A stretch of 64,000 bases of DNA, taken from NCBI GenBank assembly GCA_965113315.1, contig OZ220363.1; one strand, written 5' to 3'. Positions 3,258 to 64,000 of the stretch are shown in pieces. How positions within the stretch are numbered: position 1 is the stretch's first letter; every line of letters begins with the position of its first letter. This stretch comes from Podarcis vaucheri. Its lineage: Eukaryota. Position numbers and translations under genes: made by a program. The notes beneath the pieces were generated by a model that had not been told where the DNA came from, did not search any database, and worked only from the letters and a program-made list of their open reading frames with translations.

Positions 3258-3441
3258 CAGTGCTTTCGTTCTAAAAAAATAAATAAAAATGTTCAGTGGT
3301 GCTCGCACTTTGACTCAACCATATCACCATTTTATAGTTGAAATCGGGAAAAATAAATACAGTAAATGAACAAAAGTACAAAGATTCACAAAATGTTTAG
3401 GGGTATGTGTACCCCTGCGTCCCTCCAGAAAAAAAGCACTG
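3258..3441. mobile_element. hAT-like MITE
   Basis: Ends CAGTGCTTTC.../...AAAAAGCACTG form imperfect TIRs; no clear TSD. Confidence 0.55.
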
Positions 3442-4266
3442 GAGAAGGCTGTGCATTTTTGTATATTTTTTTCCCTGAAGAGTATAGATATAAACACTAG
3501 CCATTAACCTTAGTCTTAAGGTTAAATCAGTAACATTTTTCATCTGTCAAATTGTGTTGCTTCAAGAAATAGCCTTCCTTCTTTAAAATAGCAAAACAAA
3601 ATTATGAATGCCAATTGCCTACTTTTAATCCTTAAGATTCATCCTTTATGAACACGAAAATATGTATTTTACAGATACAGTTGGGTTAATCAAAGAGACC
3701 TCTCTGCACAGTCCTGTTCTTTTTAAGCATATGAAAGCAAAGATCAATTTTGGAAAGTTTGAAATAAATGGTCAATCTTGAACTAATACGGGTCACCATG
3801 CAGATTTAGTACCTTCATCTAAAATAAATGACATATTCCTCTCAATTTCCCATTCCTAATGCCATTGCATATCCCAGTTTAGCACCCACCTATCTAATCA
3901 AGTTATGCAGTTACTTTTATTGAGATCAGAGTACCTCTGTGCTAATAAGCTAAAGGAGAGTAAATGCATTATATGTATATTTGGAAGTAATCTAATACTG
4001 TCTTTGGGGAGGAAATCCTTCTTAAGTTGACTGCAAAACATAGTCAGACTTTGCAAAAGAAAAGAAAAGAAAAAAGAGGTTAGTTTATGCATTTTACTTA
4101 CTTTGGTAATCTACACATTAATTTTTAATGCAATTGTACAAGCTGTTGCATTTCAGACTTGCGAGGGGGGGGGGAATCTATAGCCATGACTGGGTGACAT
4201 GGTGCATTAATTCAATGTCCTTCACTCCCAGGACCTTTTTAGTTCAGCTTGAAGAAAATAACTTTG

Positions 4267-4920
4267 GACTTCCGGGGTTGACGCGATCTGGGAATGGCGG
4301 ATTCCCTCCGAGCTCCGGAGGGAATCGGCTCAGCAGGGGACGGGTCTTTGCCGTGCCGGCGACACGGGGACCCTTAAAACCGCAGGCGCGGTGCCTGCGG
4401 ACTGAAGACTCGGCGGGTGCCTTAAGCGCCCCCCCTGATTCGCGAAGAGCCTTTTTAAAGGCTGCGGAGGGGATACGGGGGGTGGCGTGGCACTGAGAGT
4501 CCATCGCTACCTCTGCTGAGCGAAGCCGCGAGCCATGACCGGAGAGCGCTGACTTCCTTCCTTGAAATTCGGCTGAAAAAACAACCCGTGAGTAATTTGG
4601 ACTTGGCTTTTAAGAAATTTATCCACTGAATTTGAGACGATCGGGGGATGTGCTAAAAGGAAGTCCGCACCCCCCCACCTTGCAGACGATCTAGAGCAAC
4701 GAAAAAAGAACTAAGCTGGAGTGCCCACCCTGTAAAGGGTGAGTTTTAAAAAAAAAAGACAGTAACTTCCAAGATTTGGAAATTTTGAGCAGGAGAGAGG
4801 AGTGTTGGATGTTTTGTGTTCTGTTGTAAACAACCCCCCCTCCCGGGCCCGGGAGCGTCCTGCTTTGGAGCTGGTTTAAGAAGTGCAGAGTTTGACAGCT
4901 GTCAAAGCTGTCAAACGGAC
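4267..4920 (+). promoter_or_regulatory. CpG-island-like internal promoter/5'UTR of the retroposon
   Basis: High GC and CpG against a CpG-poor background. ETS-like ACTTCCGG at the start, YY1-like AATGGCGG at 4293-4300. Confidence 0.6.
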
Positions 4921-5084
4921 TGTTAATAGTGGAAAATTGCTACCTAAGTTACCTCTGGATTAAAAAGAGTTACAATTGATCTAAAATTGTTGGAAATAAA
5001 GAAACAATAACAAGACAAAGGACTGTTGGGGAAAAGAATACTAAGTAACCAGATTCCCTCTAGAGGGAATTCTGTGGAATTACA

Positions 5085-5681
5085 ATGGCTGTGGATGGAA
5101 AGATACTGGGAGAAATCGAAAGGATGTTCTATTTGGTTGGAATCTTACAAGAGCAGACTACGGCTATGAGTGAACAATTGATGACCTTGACTTCTGAAAC
5201 AAGTAGTTCTGCTGAATGTAACGAGGACCTCAATGAGAAAGAATCCACAGCTGAACCAGAAATGATAATAAAAGAAGAGGAGAAGACAAAACAAGAAAGA
5301 GAAGAAGTGATGTGGGAAAATACAGAGCAGAAGCTGACGCCTGTGGAATACAAACAAGGAGATTATTGGAGCAAATCTACTATAAATCCACGAAAGATGC
5401 AGAAGACGAAAGTGGAGGTCCTGGGAGTCTATGAAATTAAGGAATTTAAAATAAAGAAATATAATCGGGGCCTCCACATAGACTCTGACTTTGATTACCT
5501 TCAAGATTCATGCCTTGTGGAAACTCTTCAGCAGCTGTTTGCAAATATGGGAAGAGACTTTGGATTGATGGTGAAAGAACTCTTTCGAGATGTGACGACT
5601 GGCATAAAGGATTACCAACAAGACCGGCGGAGAGGGACTGAAAGAGACTGGAGGGCCTCGGACGTGAGGAACCCGGGCTAG
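5085..5681 (+). CDS. 198-aa ORF inside the retroposon; N-terminal heptad/coiled-coil pattern and acidic linker; function unknown
   Basis: Longest ORF in the window, good Kozak context (ACAATGG), purine-rich L1-like composition, lies wholly within the TSD-bounded element. Confidence 0.65.
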   Translation: MAVDGKILGEIERMFYLVGILQEQTTAMSEQLMTLTSETSSSAECNEDLNEKESTAEPEMIIKEEEKTKQEREEVMWENTEQKLTPVEYKQGDYWSKSTINPRKMQKTKVEVLGVYEIKEFKIKKYNRGLHIDSDFDYLQDSCLVETLQQLFANMGRDFGLMVKELFRDVTTGIKDYQQDRRRGTERDWRASDVRNPG

Positions 5682-7054
5682 GAACTGTTATTTTGGACAT
5701 GCTTTGGGAAGGGACGCAAACCGGGGATGGGAGGGAGGGAAAAATTAAGTTCTAACAACACTCATGATTATGGGATTTGGTTAAAAAGATCATTATTCAA
5801 GACAAAATGGGAAATCGTTGGAAGGGAATTGAGGTCCAACTTAGAAAAAAATAATTTTGTTTGTTTTTATAAAAGGACTAATATTAAGACAGGGAAATGC
5901 CAATTTGCTGACATAAATTTGGAAATGGGGATGCAAGGGAGGGGGTAGGGGGAAGTCAATGACCAGGGTTAGGAAATAACATTTTCGGGAAAGTATATAT
6001 GTTTGTTGTTGTTTTCTTATTTTCTTTTTTGTTTATGTGTTTATTTGTTTTTTGTGTCTTTGTTTTTGTCTATATAAAATGTGAAAACCCAATAAAAATT
6101 TTATAAAAAAAAAAAAAAAAAAAAAGAAAATAACTTTGATCTGAATGCCGTGGAGGGAAAGAAAGCTACATATGAAATGAGTTTTGCTGGGTTTAGTGTT
6201 GTTTCTTATATACAAGACAACATATGACGATAAACTGCTTTAGCATGCTACTGACGTGGCCGAGGATTAACAGCAGACTACTCTTAGCAGCAGTTGCAGT
6301 CTTACATATACATACACACAGAATTCCCAAACTACTGTCTCTTTTTCCATTGTCACACAGAAGTTGCACATAACATATCCCTTAAGAGTTTAGTCAGGAA
6401 AGAGGTAGCTTCTGATACTTGCTTCTGCTCATAGGAGCGTCAGTGGTCTCACACTTTCTTTGGTTTTGTACAAAAATGAAACACAATTTTCTTGATCATA
6501 AAATTGGTGTACCAGAGTTAGAAAATAAGTACATAATCTTGCAAATAAATGACTGGCTGGGACAACCCAGTCAGATGGGTGGCATAACAATAATAACAAC
6601 AACAATATGTGCTATTTACATCAAACATTCAGTGTTGCACCAACTAATCTGATGACAGGCCACAAACCTAATTTATGTAAGGGCAAAACACAGGCTAAAA
6701 ATGGATTGATTCCCTTGACGTGGCTGTTTGCAAAGCCTGTCTCCTTTTCTTCTTGCAATGTATCCTCTTTCTACCGCAGAGAAACATGATTAGTGGCAAA
6801 ACGATAACTAAACAAACTGAAACATTGGAACACCAGGGTAAGATTAACATTTTCTCTGCTTACACCTCTGAGTTATGTAGTCCATCAACAAGCTTCCTTC
6901 CTTGCTCATCCAATTAAAGGTCTTGAAACAAAATATTTAAAAATGTGAAATAGCTCATTATTTGAATGCTGATGCATTAGGGCAAGTGTTGTGGCATTTT
7001 ATTTATTTATTTCAACTGGAATGTTACTGTTTTGAGTTTTGAAATCTATAAAAT

Positions 7055-7430
7055 GGCTGATTTTGCATATCACAGCAAACCATGGTTTATTATGATGGGA
7101 AGCCACAGTGAGCCTCAAATTTGTGTTGCCCCCTTCTCTCAGTGTGGAAGCTTTTACTTCTGTTTCAGATTAACTATATTTAGTTCAAACTTGGTAGAGA
7201 CTGTTTTTAATCTTATGAAATCACTTGTTCCAACAAATTATTTAAGACTAATAACATGGTTCTGATAAAGCACAGTAATGCTAAACTGTGGTTAATCAAA
7301 AATAGAAATGAAAGCTTCTGATCACCTCACAACTGTACTGGACAATAAGTAGGCAGGGGGAGTATATATGGCACAAGGCGACTTGTTTGCATCACAATAA
7401 ACCCTGGCTTATTTTGACATCCAAATGCAC
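7055..7430. repeat. Old palindromic MITE-like dispersed repeat (AAACCATGGTTT family)
   Basis: Self-complementary layout; related copies at ~10260-10538, ~29710-29810, ~36455-36790 and ~38575-38710. Confidence 0.55.
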
Positions 7431-11300: not shown

Positions 11301-11950
11301 AGAACTGAAGCGGCTAGAATAATGCCAGTTCTGTCTGATTTTTCGCAGTACATATGATTTTCACCTAAGAAGCTGCAAAATCAGAAACCCTACTCCCATG
11401 TATGGGTTTGTATAACTATCAAATCAAACTTTCTTCCAGCTTCTTAAATCTGGACTGAATTTATACACAAACCCAAAAAAGATTTCTTATCAAATTGTTG
11501 CATAATCTCAATTACCACAAGGCTCACTTCTTAAGATTCATTTTGCAGACAACCATTCAAACATTCTGCAGTGGCTTTGGAGGGCATAACCTTGCACTTT
11601 TTAATGTGTGAAAGTGTTGAGCTGTACATCATGTATGAATGATAGCCTAAACATCTAAATTGCAATACAAATGGTTTATATAAAGGATTTATCCAAAATA
11701 AAACAGATGCTTTCCGGTATCAATTGCTTATTGATAACAAAACCACTCAAATTGTAGTTCATTTGAATTGCAAGGCTGCAATCCTACACTCAGTTACCTG
11801 AGAGTAAGACCCATTGACCCATTTATCGGCTGCCTTTCCTCCTTGGCTAAAAGGTGGTGACTGGCCCAAAGTCACCAAGTGAACAGGTCACTTAACTGAT
11901 GAATGGAGGAAAGTCCCAGTGTACCAGTACCTGTGTTGATTTTTAAAATA

Positions 11951-12169
11951 TAGTGGTACCTCGGGTTAAGTACTTAATTCGTTCAGGAGGTCTGTACTTA
12001 ACCTGAAACTGTTCTTAACCTGAAGCATCACTTTAGCTAAAGGGGCCTCCTGCTGCTGCCGCGCTGCCAAAGCACGATGTTCTTAACCTGAAGCAATATT
12101 TCTGGGTTAGCGGAGTCTGTAACCTGAAGTTTATGTAACCTGAAGCGTATGTAACCCGAGGTACCACTG
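11951..12169. mobile_element. Tc1/mariner (Tigger-like) MITE
   Basis: TIRs (C/T)AGTGGTACCTCGGGTTA, TA TSD; same family as 30530-30771 and 61555-61780. Confidence 0.9.
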
Positions 12170-12604
12170 TACATGTGATCTTTTCAAAATAAAAGTTATT
12201 GTAGGGTTCAAGATTCTTCATTTTGGCTCTTCTCAAAGATCACCATAATATGCCTCCTCAAGTGGACCAAATATTGCCTATTGGTGAGAACTCACCCATG
12301 TTTCTGACATGGAAGCATTATGAGAGGAAAAGAAATCAGAATCTGTGAAATGGCTTATAATTTCAAAGAGAGGAGTATGAAGTATGAAAAACATATCACT
12401 ATAAAATACTGAGAATTGCTCCACTGAGTTCCTGCATCAAACACCACAAGCAATATGAATACACATGTTGTTTTCTGTTTTTATATATTGTCATGTTTGT
12501 TCATATCATCAAAATATTTTTGTGAGGCCTAATTGCACACAATACAAATCATGTTCAAGGCTTTCAGTAACTACTAGCCCTGATCACTATGTTCTGCTTC
12601 CACT

Positions 12605-19148: not shown

Positions 19149-19400
19149 GCCAGTGTGGTGTAGTGGTTAAGAGCGGTAGTCACGTAATCTGGGAAACCGG
19201 GTTCGCGTCTCCGCTCCTCCACATGCAGCTGCTGGGTGACCTTGGGCCAGTCACACTTCTGTGAAGTCTCTCAGCCCCACTCACCTCACAGAGTGTTTGT
19301 TGTGGGGGAGGAAGGGAAAGGAGATTGTTAGCCGCTTTGAGACTCCTGAAGGGGAGTGAAAGGCGGGATATCAAATCCAAACTCTTCTTCTTCTTCTTCT
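19149..19400 (+). mobile_element. Squam3-type (Ther1/MIR-derived) SINE
   Basis: GCCAGTGTGGTGTAGTGGTT head, GTGACCTTGGGC core, (CTT)n tail. Confidence 0.9.
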
Positions 19401-20199: not shown

Positions 20200-21050
20200 T
20201 ATTTTTCCTTTATCTCTCTGCATCTTTTGATACCATGGGGTCCTTTTGGAGCGGTTCTGGAGGTCTGGAGCACCATGTTATAACGAGAGCCAGTGTGGTG
20301 TAGTGGTTAAGAGCGGTAGTCACGTAATCTGGGTAACCGGGTTCGCGTCTCCGCTCCTCCACATGCAGCTGCTGGGTGACCTTGGGCCAGTCACACTTCT
20401 GTGAAGTCTCTCAGCCCCACTCACCTCACAGAGTGTTTGTTGTGGGCGAGGAAGGGAAAGGAGAATGTTAGCCGCTTTGAGACTCCTGAAGGGGAGTGAA
20501 AGGCGGGATATCAAATCCAAAACTCTTCTTCTCTTCTTCTTCTTTTGTGATCAATATCAGAAAGCAGCACTGGATGACTTCTGCTCAGCCGCCTGACTGT
20601 GGGGTACTGTGGGGTCCTTTAAGGTTCCATTCTTCCTCTGATGCTATTTAATGTATATATAAAACCACTGGAATATGTCAACCAGGTATATGGAGCATAG
20701 GGTCATCAGTATGTAGATGACACCCAAGTTCTTCTTTCCATTCCATATGAATTGGGAGAGACTTTGCCCAGAAGCTGGTCCAACAACTAGAGGCAGTAAT
20801 GGACTGGATAAGAGTCAGTAAATGGAAACTAAAGCCTGGTATGATGGAGGCACTGATGATCATAAGATAAGAGGCACAGATTGTGGCTTCTGGGTCCAGG
20901 AGTTGACCTGTTGGGGATTGTCTTGAACTTGCAAACATGAAGTAGCAGCCTGGGGATGCTCCTTGAGTAAACATTGTAATTTGAGGCTCAGGTAATGAGA
21001 AGTGCCTATTTCCAGCTTCAACTGGTTCATCTGCTACAGCCATCCTTGCT
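20200..21050 (+). mobile_element. Degraded L2 LINE RT region, interrupted by a SINE
   Basis: Decayed codons for LDLSAAFDT, GSILxPMLFNxYxKPL and HQYxDDTQ motifs. Confidence 0.8.
20289..20543 (+). mobile_element. Squam3-type SINE inserted in an L2 fragment
   Basis: Only 3 substitutions versus 19149-19400 outside the tail. Confidence 0.9.
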
Positions 21051-29532: not shown

Positions 29533-30529
29533 CCTAACTCTTATTGCAATTTTCTATAGGAAAAAATAAAGTACAACTTAGACATATTTGATGAAAGAAC
29601 ATACAAAATAAAAATAAATAAATACCAGGTACATTGGGCTGGATCCAAACCTAGACCCAATCCATGCAGTGTGTCTCCTCTTATTCTGTAGTTGCCACAT
29701 TATCTGAGACCAAGGCATGGTTTGGCTTAGTGTTATGTTTGAACCAACCAGTTTCATCCGACCACAAACCATTATTGACAAAAAGCAATAAGGATTGTGT
29801 CACATTTTTGTCTGATGTGCATAAAAAACAAGTTGCAGAACTTTGAAATGTCAATGAAAGAATGAAACTTCAAATATATAAATCTGAGGCCCCCTTTGCG
29901 TTTAAGGACCTGGGACTAATAGCCCTCCTGAACACTCCTCTCCCATACGGCCCGCCTATCTATATCCCATACTCCTTCCACTGCCATGAAGCTGACCCTC
30001 ACTGACACACAGCTACTGAAAGCCAAACATAATCACAGAAATAGCACTTAGGTAATGCCTAAGAGAAAGTGCCATAAACTAACAGCTGTGACATATAATC
30101 AATGGCGCTCCTGGTAAAACAATATTCAGAATAACCTTGCTTATTTAAAACAACATCCAATATGTACACAGAATGTTCTAACCAAGCCATTTAAAAAATG
30201 ATCACAGGTATCCAAAGAAGGTGGGTGAATTCTTATGTACTTCAAAGAGAGTTTCATGCTTTTACTTCAAATGATTAGTCTTGAAAGCAATGTAACTGCA
30301 ATATATATTAATCCACTAGAGTACACATTGAACACATTGCTTCCAAGCACCACTGACTAAGTGTCTCAACAGAATTGCTTCCATGTTATAACAGTAAACC
30401 GCTCTGTATATTTAAAGGGAATGAAAGTTACTCCTTTGCTGAAATAACATTTGCAATAGGAAACAGAACTATACGGGACTAAACAAATATCCAAACTGGT
30501 TTGTTGGTACAGATCAGTGCAGGTGAATA

Positions 30530-30771
30530 CAGTGGTACCCCGGATTACATATGCTTCAGGTTACATACGCTTCAGGTTACAGATTCTGCTAACCCAGAAA
30601 TATTACCTCAGGTTAAGAACTTTGCTTCAGGATGAGAACAGAAATAGTGTTCCGGCGGCGCAGCGGCAGGAGGACGCCCCATTAGCTAAAGTGGTGCTTC
30701 AGGTTAAGTACAGTTTCAGGTTTAGAACAGACCTCCGGAACGAATTAAGTACTTAACCCGAGGTACCACTG
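30530..30771. mobile_element. Tigger-like MITE
   Basis: CAGTGGTACC TIRs and TA TSD; reverse orientation to 11951-12169. Confidence 0.9.
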
Positions 30772-31520
30772 TACTTGCAAAACATTCACTTGTTGAAGCA
30801 CTTTGAGATGCATTTGTTCACAATCAGAGTCCAAAACAGAGACATTCTTAAGCTTTGCAGGGATAGAGCAAGGGTTCACATCTTGAACAAAGGACTTGTT
30901 CTGTTTGTAATTCTCATATGGGTATTGAGATATTTGCATTTTCCACAACAGATTCTCTCCCCGCAACTAGCATGTGTCAAATTTGAGTGAATGTATACTT
31001 AAAGAAATACAGTAGCTCAAAGGCTATCCAATATTGAGCTAAAGTAACTACTAACACATACCAAAATTGTTAACAGATGTTGCAAGCATTTACTATCTCC
31101 CTCAGTTTGACATACAGGGAACGCCGTGTTTGCACTCTGGTTGCGCTCTGGGTCAGTTTGTGAGTCAGTGGCCATGCATAAGCCTGTTCCACTCCTGCTC
31201 TGCCCCCTTCCAGAGCCAAAAGCAGCGCACATGTTGGCATGCACAAAATGGTTGCCACCTGTATGTTTGCCAGTAGGAACTCTGAAAATATTGCTGCTCT
31301 GCCACCTAAATCTAGAAAATTGATGGACACCCACCAACCTTTGAAAAGGAAGGTAGGTACGGCTGCTATAGCTACTTGGCCAGATATGCTTCAGGGTTGA
31401 ATAGAAGGCTCCCCACAATGCTTGGTGTTCATTTAAGAAAGCACTAAGGGAAAACTGTTTTCAATTAATAGAGTCCTTTCTACAGATCAGTTACATTTGA
31501 TGCAAGACACTATTGTTATA

Positions 31521-60600: not shown

Positions 60601-61554
60601 ACCATATCCTTCATTTAATTCCTGAAGTTGGTTTTATGTTTTTGTAAAAAATTACCTGGGTGCAAATTTGTCTTGCGTGTTTACCAATACCCTGCTCAAA
60701 AACCCCACAACTTTATAACACATTGCATAATATTTGCAACAGCTCATAATAGGGCAAATAAATATTTATTCTTCACTTTTCCACTGAAATCAGTGAAACA
60801 AAGTGTTTAGCTGTGGCTGGATATGCTCAATACATATACTGTAATTATTTGTATAAAATATTAGCACTGTACAACTGGAAAACCAAACAGCATATAAGAG
60901 ACAACACTATAAACATAATATTTTGGGCTGCTTTGACTGGAAGATATAAGTAAAAAAGCCAAAATGTTTTTTTTGGGGGGGGGATTACCTTGCAAATATC
61001 CAGAGCTAAAAAGGAATAAAAAATGTTACCAGCCAATTCATAACTAGTATCCTAAACTAACTCATGAACTTTTAGGTTAATCATTTTTATGCATCTAAAG
61101 CCAGAATCCAACTTTCTGCAGAAGGCCTACCCTCCTCCATGCCAGAAGAAACCTGCAAACAGGGTTTTTAAATAGTGCAGTATGAAGGAGAAAAAAGTTC
61201 AGTGAAGCAGCAGCGTCATGACACTCAGAATATGGTGAAAACAGCTTCCAAGAAGTCTACTATCTAATGGCCTTTGATGTTTACTGTACACTTGCAGCTT
61301 CATTACAACACTTAGCAAGCATCTGCCAAGTTGGTAGGACTGAAAGGAAAGAGATAAAAACCCACCTTTGCCTCAAAATGGGGGCAGGGGAGATCAGATA
61401 TGCCCATTCTTTTGTCAGAAAGACAAAAGTTGTTGACAAGGACAAAAGGAGATCTAGAAGCATAGCTATAATTAAAACTATTACTGATCCCCAGGGGAAA
61501 AAATCCTGGCAAATCCAAAAGCAAATGGAGGCATGACAAATATATACACACATA

Positions 61555-61780
61555 AAGTGGTACCTCTGGTTATGAACTTAATTCATTCTGGAGGTCCGTT
61601 CTTAACCTGAAACCGTTCTTAACCTGAAGCACCACTTTAGCTAATGGGGCCTCCCACCGCTACCGCGCCACCACCGCACGATTTCTCTTCTTATCCTGAG
61701 GTAAAGTTCTTAACCCGAGGTACTACTTCTGGGTTAGCGGAGTCTGTATCCCGAAGTGTTTGTAACCTGAGGTACCACTG
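61555..61780. mobile_element. Tigger-like MITE
   Basis: AGTGGTACCTC TIRs and TA TSD; same family as 11951-12169. Confidence 0.9.
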
Positions 61781-64000
61781 TACATACAAATGTGTGCATG
61801 TGCACACACATTGGTAAAATGTTTTAGACAAATGTGAAACCTCACTTCCATATTTGCTTGCTGTCATCTAGTGTGTAACACAACATAAAGAGTAACCAGA
61901 AGATTTACAATCCAAAGATGAAGATTTTACTTTGCCATGGTGAATTCACTTCATAAAACAGAGAGAGAACACTTCAGTAGAAAATGTTGGCAGACCTCTT
62001 GGGAGTAACAGGGCACATTAATTTATATGACATGCTGCCCTGTTTCTCTTATAGAGGCCCATAGGAGGAGTTTGCTACCCTGAGCTTTTACTTAGGTCCC
62101 TAATGAAAATAAAAATGTTTTCAGCCCGTTAGTTGGGCACTTTAAACTATCATGCATGCCTTTCTTTGTACGTCCACCTCCCACCCCTACAATTTTTTAA
62201 AAAAACAAATATTACCTCTAAGTATATATGACTAATACGATTCAAAATTTATAAGATGCAATTGAAACAGCACAAGTGACACACACTTCAGTGTGCTGTT
62301 ATTGGGTGCAATGGACACCCTAAAGCACACAAAAGCCAAGAATCACACTGCTGCTATTGCAACCTTTTGTACAAGCAATATTATGACGTGTTAGTGTATT
62401 TTTCAATGCAAAAAGTGAATGTTTAATGGGAACAAAACCCCTTAAGTCCCTACTGGTCTTTTCATGGATTTGTTTGCTTTTGCTGTGTGTGCTTTTCTGC
62501 AGCCCCAACAAACTGCTGCTATATGGCCGTTTTTAGGGGTTCTCCCTAGCTAGCCAAATCAGCAGTCACTCAGGGCAAACAAAAGCATGTCTTCACTGTC
62601 CTTACTCTGAAGGGGTGGGTGAGAAAGGAGAAACTATAATGTGGATCAGAGAGCCAAAGGAAAGGAGAGACTATGATTTGTATCAGAGATCCTGTGAGCA
62701 GAACTCTGTCCATGGGCTGCGCCTACTTGCAGAAAGGATATTTTCAGATCCCCCTTCACTGCCCAAAAAAATCTCAAGAGCTGTCTGACCCCCTTCACCA
62801 TGGCGGGGCAGGGGCAAGCAAGATTGTAGAGTCCAACTCCACCTTTCTGTGGTTTCACAATTAGAGTTAAGTAACATGAGAGGGAAGTCAGGATCAGGGT
62901 TGTAGCCTGGGTAGGCTAAAAACAGCATTTATGCAGTGCACTCTTTGTTAGATGAGATTATGTAATCCATAATGATTTAAAGCTCTAATGTCCTCCAGGC
63001 ACTGCCACCTACCCCATGTGTGGCCCCTGAAATGGTCAGTTCTGTATCTGGCTGTTAGTCAATTGAAAGAAAGGAGTTGTTAACATTTAATCACCACAGA
63101 ATCAGATAGCTTAAAACAAGGTAAAAAAAATGTCATTTTGGCAAAACAGTCAAGGCAGCAAAAAAGCATGAATTGTGCCAGGAAAGGCCAATTGTCAAAA
63201 AAATTGGCTAAATGTCCTTCTGTTTCAGACAATAGCTTATAAAGAAATTAAGAGTCAGTTAAACTAATTCACTTTAGAGGAGCTTGCCATCATAAGGCTG
63301 ACAGAATTCCAGTAGTTCAATAGTGAGACACAGAAACTGTCAATGGTCCCTCAAGCAATTAATTTTCTCCCAGCTCTTCAGAACTGCATTTCAAGAAGTA
63401 TTTGCAGGATCCGACCTAACCTTACCAGGAAATGCCCAAACAAAACAGTGCTGCCACATCCTAAGCCTTATCAGAAAGTTGAAAGTAGTGACCCACTAAG
63501 AGAGAAAACACTAAGCAATATTTTAATTACGGTACGTGCTTCATAATAACTACTAAAAAAAACAACATTAAACTCAAACTAATCACACTTGTTACCTAAC
63601 TCAGATTTAGACTTCTGTAGGTGCAGAGTGAAATATTTAGTTCATTATCTATATACAATGCATACTAGAAATAGCTGCTTACATAAAACAAAAGTATAGG
63701 GTCCAATTCTTACATGCAAACAGTGACATGGAGGCTGTTCAAAACTCACAAGTGTATATAGTCTGCCAGGTGGGTCAAACAAAAATAAGACGATACGGGA
63801 AACTGATATACATATTTAAACAAACAAAGTCCTCAACTCATGGTTTGTAGCCTGACCTGAAGTGGGTTGCAAATGGAATTTAGGGATGGGGTGCTGGTCA
63901 TGGGCACAAACAATCAATATGGTAGTAGTAGAATGTGTGTAGAATAAAAGCTCCCCCCCACTTGAAAATAGCTTCCAGACAGTCTTGAAGAAGCTGGCCT

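Follow-up and report, generated by a model that had tools for sequence, protein, structure and literature searches.

The 64,000-nt stretch of contig OZ220363.1 from Podarcis vaucheri (assembly GCA_965113315.1) that we analyzed, called the window here and numbered from its first letter, contains a sharply bounded insert of 1,857 bp at positions 4267–6123. The insert carries one intact open reading frame (ORF) of 198 codons, and the question it raises is what kind of element this is and how it reached its site. From the sequence alone, the original prediction had described it as a young and complete L1-mobilised retroposon that has its own promoter and a protein-coding ORF and is without reverse transcriptase. 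Our analysis makes it probable that the insert is one full-length and very recent member of a family of non-autonomous, poly(A)-type retroposons that exists in many copies in lacertid lizards and is mobilised by L1.

The manner of its arrival can be read from the boundaries. The insert is bracketed by perfect 15-bp target-site duplications (TSDs; 4252–4266 on the 5′ side and the same letters at 6124–6138 on the 3′ side, plus strand), whose length falls within the ~7–20 bp range set for L1-type insertions, and the 15-mer is among the very few in the window that recur at a distance of 0.5–7 kb and belong neither to simple sequence nor to known repeats. At the 3′ end, an AATAAA polyadenylation signal (6091–6096) is followed after eight bases by a pure poly(A) tail of 19 A (6105–6123); the unbroken A run extends to 21 A (6105–6125), the last two of which are common to the TSD. 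The inferred bottom-strand nick is TTCTT/CA, read as ...TTATTTTCTT/CAAG, a T-rich site whose position is ambiguous by 2 nt.

An empty allele of the same site is present in a public sequencing run (X4) of another sample that bears the same species label as run X1. In a 1,212-nt contig of X4 (record 25), letters 1–789 correspond to 3475–4266 and letters 790–1212 to 6139–6561, so that 4266 is joined straight to 6139 and a single copy of the 15-mer is kept. Because this empty site is exact and retains one 15-mer, the insert must have arrived by an insertion that generated the duplication. The insertion is polymorphic, being missing from the X4 individual, and the precise 15-bp duplication, the pure A tail and the exact empty allele are characteristic of target-primed reverse transcription. 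In run X1, contigs from the flanks either terminate exactly at 4266 (record 3) or begin 15 letters before 6139, at 6124 (record 7 resumes at 6139), and none extends 30 nt into the insert; such contig ends are what a de Bruijn graph would give if the sample carries both filled and empty alleles.

The composition of the insert agrees with a recent arrival. Its first 294 bp (4267–4560, 65% GC) have an observed/expected (o/e) CpG ratio of 0.98, and the remainder of the element lies at 0.43–0.56, whereas the ratio is 0.23 in both 1-kb flanks and in the window as a whole. With a ratio so far above that of its flanks, the insert has so far not undergone the CpG decay of its surroundings. The empty allele, the uninterrupted tail, a TSD without mismatch and CpGs that are still in place together identify a very young insertion. 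The features on which the original prediction was built thus hold up at base resolution, namely the perfect 15-bp TSD, the AATAAA with 21 A, the un-decayed CpG-rich 5′ end and a total length of ~1.86 kb, and the presence/absence polymorphism that it had proposed as a check is found at this very locus.

To place the insert in a family, contigs of four public runs with three organism labels were aligned to positions 3267–7123 at a likeness of at least 80%. Summed contig depth is not a copy number and is read here as an order of magnitude only; on this scale the element bins (4299–6104) reach ~1 × 10⁵ in X1, ~6 × 10⁴ in X4 and ~3 × 10⁴ in X3, against flank depths of 74.5, 11.8 and ~96, respectively, with one contig for each unique flank. 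The high-copy signal starts and stops at the ends of the element, where the flank contigs break. Over the aligned region there are 11,120 contigs in X1, 8,598 in X4 and 3,199 in X3, counts that include two high-copy flank repeats, and their identities to this stretch run from above 99% to below 90%. The family therefore exceeds the single-copy level by a factor of hundreds to thousands, and since the 5′ part of the element is not under-represented, most copies are probably full length. The fourth run (X17, the third organism label) contains fragments at lower identity, and runs of three further organisms (C, D and E) contain 5–12% of the words of the element, from which it follows that related species carry diverged relatives. 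Within the window itself there is no second copy of the element, and no L1 ORF is found among the ten longest other ORFs.

The ORF occupies 5085–5681 on the plus strand and begins with an ATG in good context (A at −3, G at +4). At 198 aa it is the longest ORF on either strand of the window, in which the next longest has 133 aa, and the only one of more than 122 aa in the element; an ORF of this length arises in 31 of 5,000 composition-matched Markov shuffles of the element. Neither the 198-aa ORF nor any other ORF piece of the element, on either strand, has a match in Pfam, and no reverse transcriptase, endonuclease or Transposase_22 domain was found by this search. The element is without reverse transcriptase or endonuclease coding capacity, and both the single intact ORF and this lack of enzymatic coding are as the original prediction had it.

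Protein searches return approximately 20 relatives of the ORF, mostly full length, at 27–72% identity. A word-seeded search of 5.8 billion proteins gave five full-length relatives (P0001–P0005, 188–201 aa, 48–70% identity), and an exhaustive HMMER search of 1.84 billion representatives added seven more, down to 33% identity, of which five are full length (201–215 aa), P0012 has 176 aa and one is a fragment of 129 aa; P0012–P0019 share 33–46% identity with the ORF. The HMMER search of these representatives returned no longer relative and no L1 ORF1p or ORF2p. When the family profile and the distant member P0019 served as queries in further searches, P0023 was the single addition and no named protein appeared; nothing usable came from the ESM Atlas, and the 19 patterns that the profile matched in a metagenome scan include no relative. 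The relatives come from Logan contigs of 0.9–1.9 kb, about the size of the element, with the exception of P0017, the 129-aa fragment, which is annotated as a hypothetical protein of Podarcis lilfordi. Two of the relative clusters hold several near-identical variants on different contigs.

An alignment of 18 family sequences shows what these proteins hold in common. All share the initiator Met and a terminal ...ASD-x-R-x-PG before the stop, and 2 of the 18 have a 12-residue upstream extension. Residues 1–45 and the last ~35 residues are well conserved, and the acidic middle is variable, with indels that are all in frame. Compared as proteins rather than as DNA, the relatives suggest that the frame has been kept open over a degree of divergence at which a neutral frame of 600 nt would have been lost. 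The same residues connect the proteins to the abundant DNA. At three positions where the majority letter of the family differs from this copy (5419 T>C, V112A; 5466 C>T, R128W; 5650 G>T, W189L), the majority encodes the residue found in the protein relatives, which means that the family seen as abundant DNA and the one seen as proteins are one and the same. A further difference, 5681 G>A, falls in the stop codon, which is TAG here and TAA in nearly all other copies. P0017 leaves the family frame just before the stop (compared with window positions 5650–5770), and its tail matches the start of the 3′ untranslated region (UTR) of the element piecewise in two frames, including the first G-rich tract, so this part of the 3′ UTR seems to be conserved between species.

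Structure prediction offers some indication of the shape that the protein may take. AlphaFold2 with the family alignment gives a helix at residues 4–41 of moderate confidence (predicted local distance difference test score, pLDDT, 60–77), the mean over the protein being 44. Glu abounds in the middle of the protein, which ends in a basic stretch of 38 residues (isoelectric point (pI) 9.7). When residues 1–60 were predicted as a homotrimer, the score was 0.36 versus 0.02 for the best control, the runs agreed in at least 91% of contacts, and the pLDDT of the partners was at least 66. In the calibration, which used two copies and mostly microbial proteins, 21 of 30 solved same-chain pairs and none of 23 solved single chains reached the mark for self-association. 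Contacts in the trimer are spaced by 3–4 residues (7, 11, 14, 18, 21, 25, 28, 32, 35 and 39) and are in register, with residue 21 touching 21 and residue 18 touching 18. The model supports, rather than shows, the formation of a parallel coiled coil by the N-terminal helix.

The non-coding parts of the element complete the picture. The CpG-island-like 5′ end (4267–4560, plus strand), with which the high-copy signal begins, is a putative internal RNA polymerase II (Pol II) promoter, and 28 nt from the 5′ end it contains a YY1-like core, ATGGCG (4294–4299, plus strand), which may be comparable to the YY1 box found close to the 5′ end of human L1. The leader as a whole is 818 nt long (4267–5084, plus strand) and has few upstream ATGs (4 versus 10.1 ± 2.4 in dinucleotide shuffles, with 6 of 1,000 shuffles as low), all of its upstream ORFs having at most 27 codons; because the antisense strand is ATG-poor too, this depletion is weak evidence. 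A G-quadruplex motif lies on the minus strand of the leader at 4834–4850, where the sense strand is C-rich. Two hexamers resembling splice donors, GTGAGT, are present at 4588–4593 and 4742–4747, the second followed by a run of ten A (4748–4757). As splice donors these were rejected: contigs of X17 skip 4469–4643, 4561–4643 and 4675–4834, and the joints are without GT..AG ends and look like indels between subfamilies.

Downstream of the ORF, the 3′ UTR (5682–6104, plus strand, 423 nt) is G-rich on the sense strand (24% G versus 9% C; GC skew 0.35–0.53). A motif scan of the 64-kb window found three plus-strand G-quadruplex motifs, and two of them are in this 3′ UTR, at 5723–5739 and 5927–5952. 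The G-quadruplex motifs of human L1 are confined almost entirely to the plus strand of the 3′ UTR (PMC4407331). At the other end of the element no small-RNA head was detected by Rfam at E-values up to 1 and no tRNA-like head by ARAGORN, and the output of TRF is limited to small T-rich repeats and the tail, with no variable-number tandem repeat (VNTR) module. A CpG-rich leader, a single ORF, a 3′ UTR bearing G-quadruplex motifs, a polyadenylation signal and a tail together make up the layout of an L1 minus ORF2.

Among known elements, the closest comparison is HAL1, described as a non-autonomous derivative of L1 with several origins and with ORF1p as its sole product (PMC5753468). Like mammalian HAL1, the lizard element is a poly(A) retroposon of ~2 kb with a leader, one ORF, a 3′ UTR and no ORF2, and it is multi-copy, long-lived and non-autonomous. 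Unlike HAL1, its host is a lizard rather than a mammal, and its ORF is not recognisably ORF1p: the protein has an N-terminal coiled coil only, a pI of 4.9, and no Transposase_22, RNA-recognition motif (RRM) or C-terminal domain (CTD). Pfam applied to 18 family members returned no meaningful or recurrent family, L1 ORF1p, RRM and CTD included. Given an ORF without recognisable ORF1p homology in Pfam or in the exhaustive HMMER search, we rejected an assignment to HAL1 in the strict sense, while allowing that a very remote homology confined to the coiled coil could exist. The resemblance to L1 ORF1p lies instead in the N-terminal helix with its heptad contacts and predicted parallel self-association, and in the position of the gene, which is the first ORF downstream of a long leader rich in CpG; the differences are the absence of detectable sequence homology and of RNA-binding domains, and a basic character limited to the last 38 residues. 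The usual ORF1p is also about twice as long as this protein. With SVA, other L1-mobilised composites and processed pseudogenes the element shares the AATAAA signal of a Pol II-type transcript, a poly(A) tail, a 15-bp TSD and, presumably, the use of ORF2p in trans. It differs from the SVA-type composites in having a conserved ORF and no VNTR, SINE (short interspersed element) or Rfam-recognised RNA module, and from a processed pseudogene in a copy number far above that of a retrocopy and in the failure of our searches to find a parent protein. No description of such a lizard family was found in the literature searched, a search that did not extend to Repbase and Dfam.

Other explanations of the locus have to be weighed against this evidence. 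Although the TSD and poly(A) tail by themselves would fit an isolated processed pseudogene and an isolated L1 with an internal deletion equally well, a depth of hundreds to thousands of times that of the flanks in four read sets, contigs that break at the ends of the element and the many diverged protein relatives make a one-off event of either kind exceedingly improbable. The original prediction is borne out here as well: it had seen a member of a family rather than a single-copy sequence (~1 × 10⁵ versus 74.5 in summed depth in X1), and had named as readings that would overturn it a one-off internal deletion of an L1, against which the ~20 relatives and the agreement of the majority letters with their residues now speak, and a retrocopy, against which the high copy number and the lack of a parent protein do. 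Another possibility is that a host-gene mRNA, and not L1, gave rise to the family, as a retrogene turned retroposon in which the ORF is the remnant of a host protein and the CpG-rich 5′ end the 5′ exon of a CpG-island gene. In a profile search of the PDB, residues 1–42 (5085–5210) align without gaps, Met1 to Met1, with residues 1–42 of human neuroguidin (E = 0.2), alongside one match to a coiled-coil spike, and the lack of any similarity found to L1 ORF1p would fit such a founder. The neuroguidin match is not significant, however, and comprises an amphipathic helix only; two such helices may resemble each other by chance, or the match may reflect a host-gene origin. No alignment extends past residue 42, the Sas10/Utp3 family of Pfam is not matched, no longer or annotated host protein turned up among the 1.84 billion representatives, and the G-quadruplex-rich 3′ UTR and YY1-like core are L1-like, for which reasons we regard a host-gene founder as quite improbable.

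It is also conceivable that the ORF is not functional as a protein, being open through youth or because the RNA or its translation itself matters, in which case the element would amount to a SINE-like L1 parasite that is long and non-coding. The protein is predicted to be largely disordered and has no known domain, and the listed differences between copies show no excess at third positions (12 at third, 7 at first and 12 at second positions). Differences among dead copies are expected to be neutral, however, and provide no test of selection on the active lineage. The relatives at 27–50% identity keep the Met and the stop and have in-frame indels only, whereas neutral decay would break a frame of 600 nt, and conservation is centred on the coiled coil and the C-terminal motif. 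We consider it unlikely, on balance, that the ORF is without function as a protein.

We therefore return to a non-autonomous family mobilised by L1, for which the following sequence of events can be proposed. Pol II would start transcription of an element at an internal promoter within the CpG-rich 5′ end, as a family that continually makes full-length copies needs a promoter that travels along, although a single master locus with an outside promoter could be the source instead. The transcript would be polyadenylated at the element's own AATAAA, and ORF2 protein supplied in trans by an autonomous L1 would insert copies of it at new sites; among vertebrate long interspersed elements (LINEs), a poly(A) tail together with a 15-bp duplication is typical of L1, which is why we favor this machinery. 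The protein may self-associate through its N-terminal coiled coil, as L1 ORF1p does, and may help its own RNA to be packaged or to reach and dock to the L1 machinery. As for ancestry, the layout suggests, as for mammalian HAL1, descent from an L1 that had lost ORF2, its remaining ORF having diverged beyond recognition or been replaced. More tentatively, and at odds we would put as rather low, this could be a new retroposon protein unrelated to the ORF1p of the RRM/CTD type: short, acidic, made of a coiled coil and a basic tail, retained over a very long period (the identity of relatives goes down to 27%), and allowing an element without reverse transcriptase to compete for or dock onto the L1 ribonucleoprotein, for example by co-assembling with ORF1p through the coiled coil.

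Several observations weigh against parts of this scheme. The inferred nick, TTCTT/CA, differs from the canonical TTTT/AA, and the argument for both L1 descent and L1 dependence is drawn entirely from architecture. None of the public runs that contain the element is on record as RNA. The protein is acidic, unlike the basic ORF1p, it has neither RRM nor CTD, and its residues 40–186 have a pLDDT below 50. Finally, the protein database consists of intact called ORFs only, so that the sample of relatives is biased toward open frames.

In the flanks of the insert, two short stretches, 3267–3524 and 6492–6620, belong to other very high-copy repeats, with a summed depth of up to 8 × 10⁵ in X1; they have many different continuations at 3434–3442 and 6554, respectively, and no tRNA head. 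Elsewhere in the window, a 252-nt direct repeat (19149–19400 and 20289–20540) has copies with 96% identity that are 1,140 nt apart, and copies of a SINE-like repeat are found in both orientations at 83–90% identity (11940–12174, 30528–30782, 40558–40619 and 61552–61785).

To our knowledge, the main examples of non-autonomous L1 parasites that keep their own protein are the extinct HAL1 elements of mammals, and we know of no case in which the contribution of a HAL1-type protein has been put to the test. With an insertion that is polymorphic, un-decayed and intact in a family that is very abundant, a comparable family appears to be active now in a living lizard. Should Repbase or Dfam already list it, the value of the finding would shrink to one of annotation. 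If the protein is indeed a new kind of retroposon protein, the family would represent a protein-coding parasite of L1 that is still active and polymorphic in a living lizard. An apparently active family whose ORF is not a standard ORF1p offers a natural system for defining the minimal protein requirement in hijacking L1 in trans and for asking whether a coiled coil without an RNA-binding domain suffices, and it is a ready source of insertion polymorphisms for the population genetics of lacertids.

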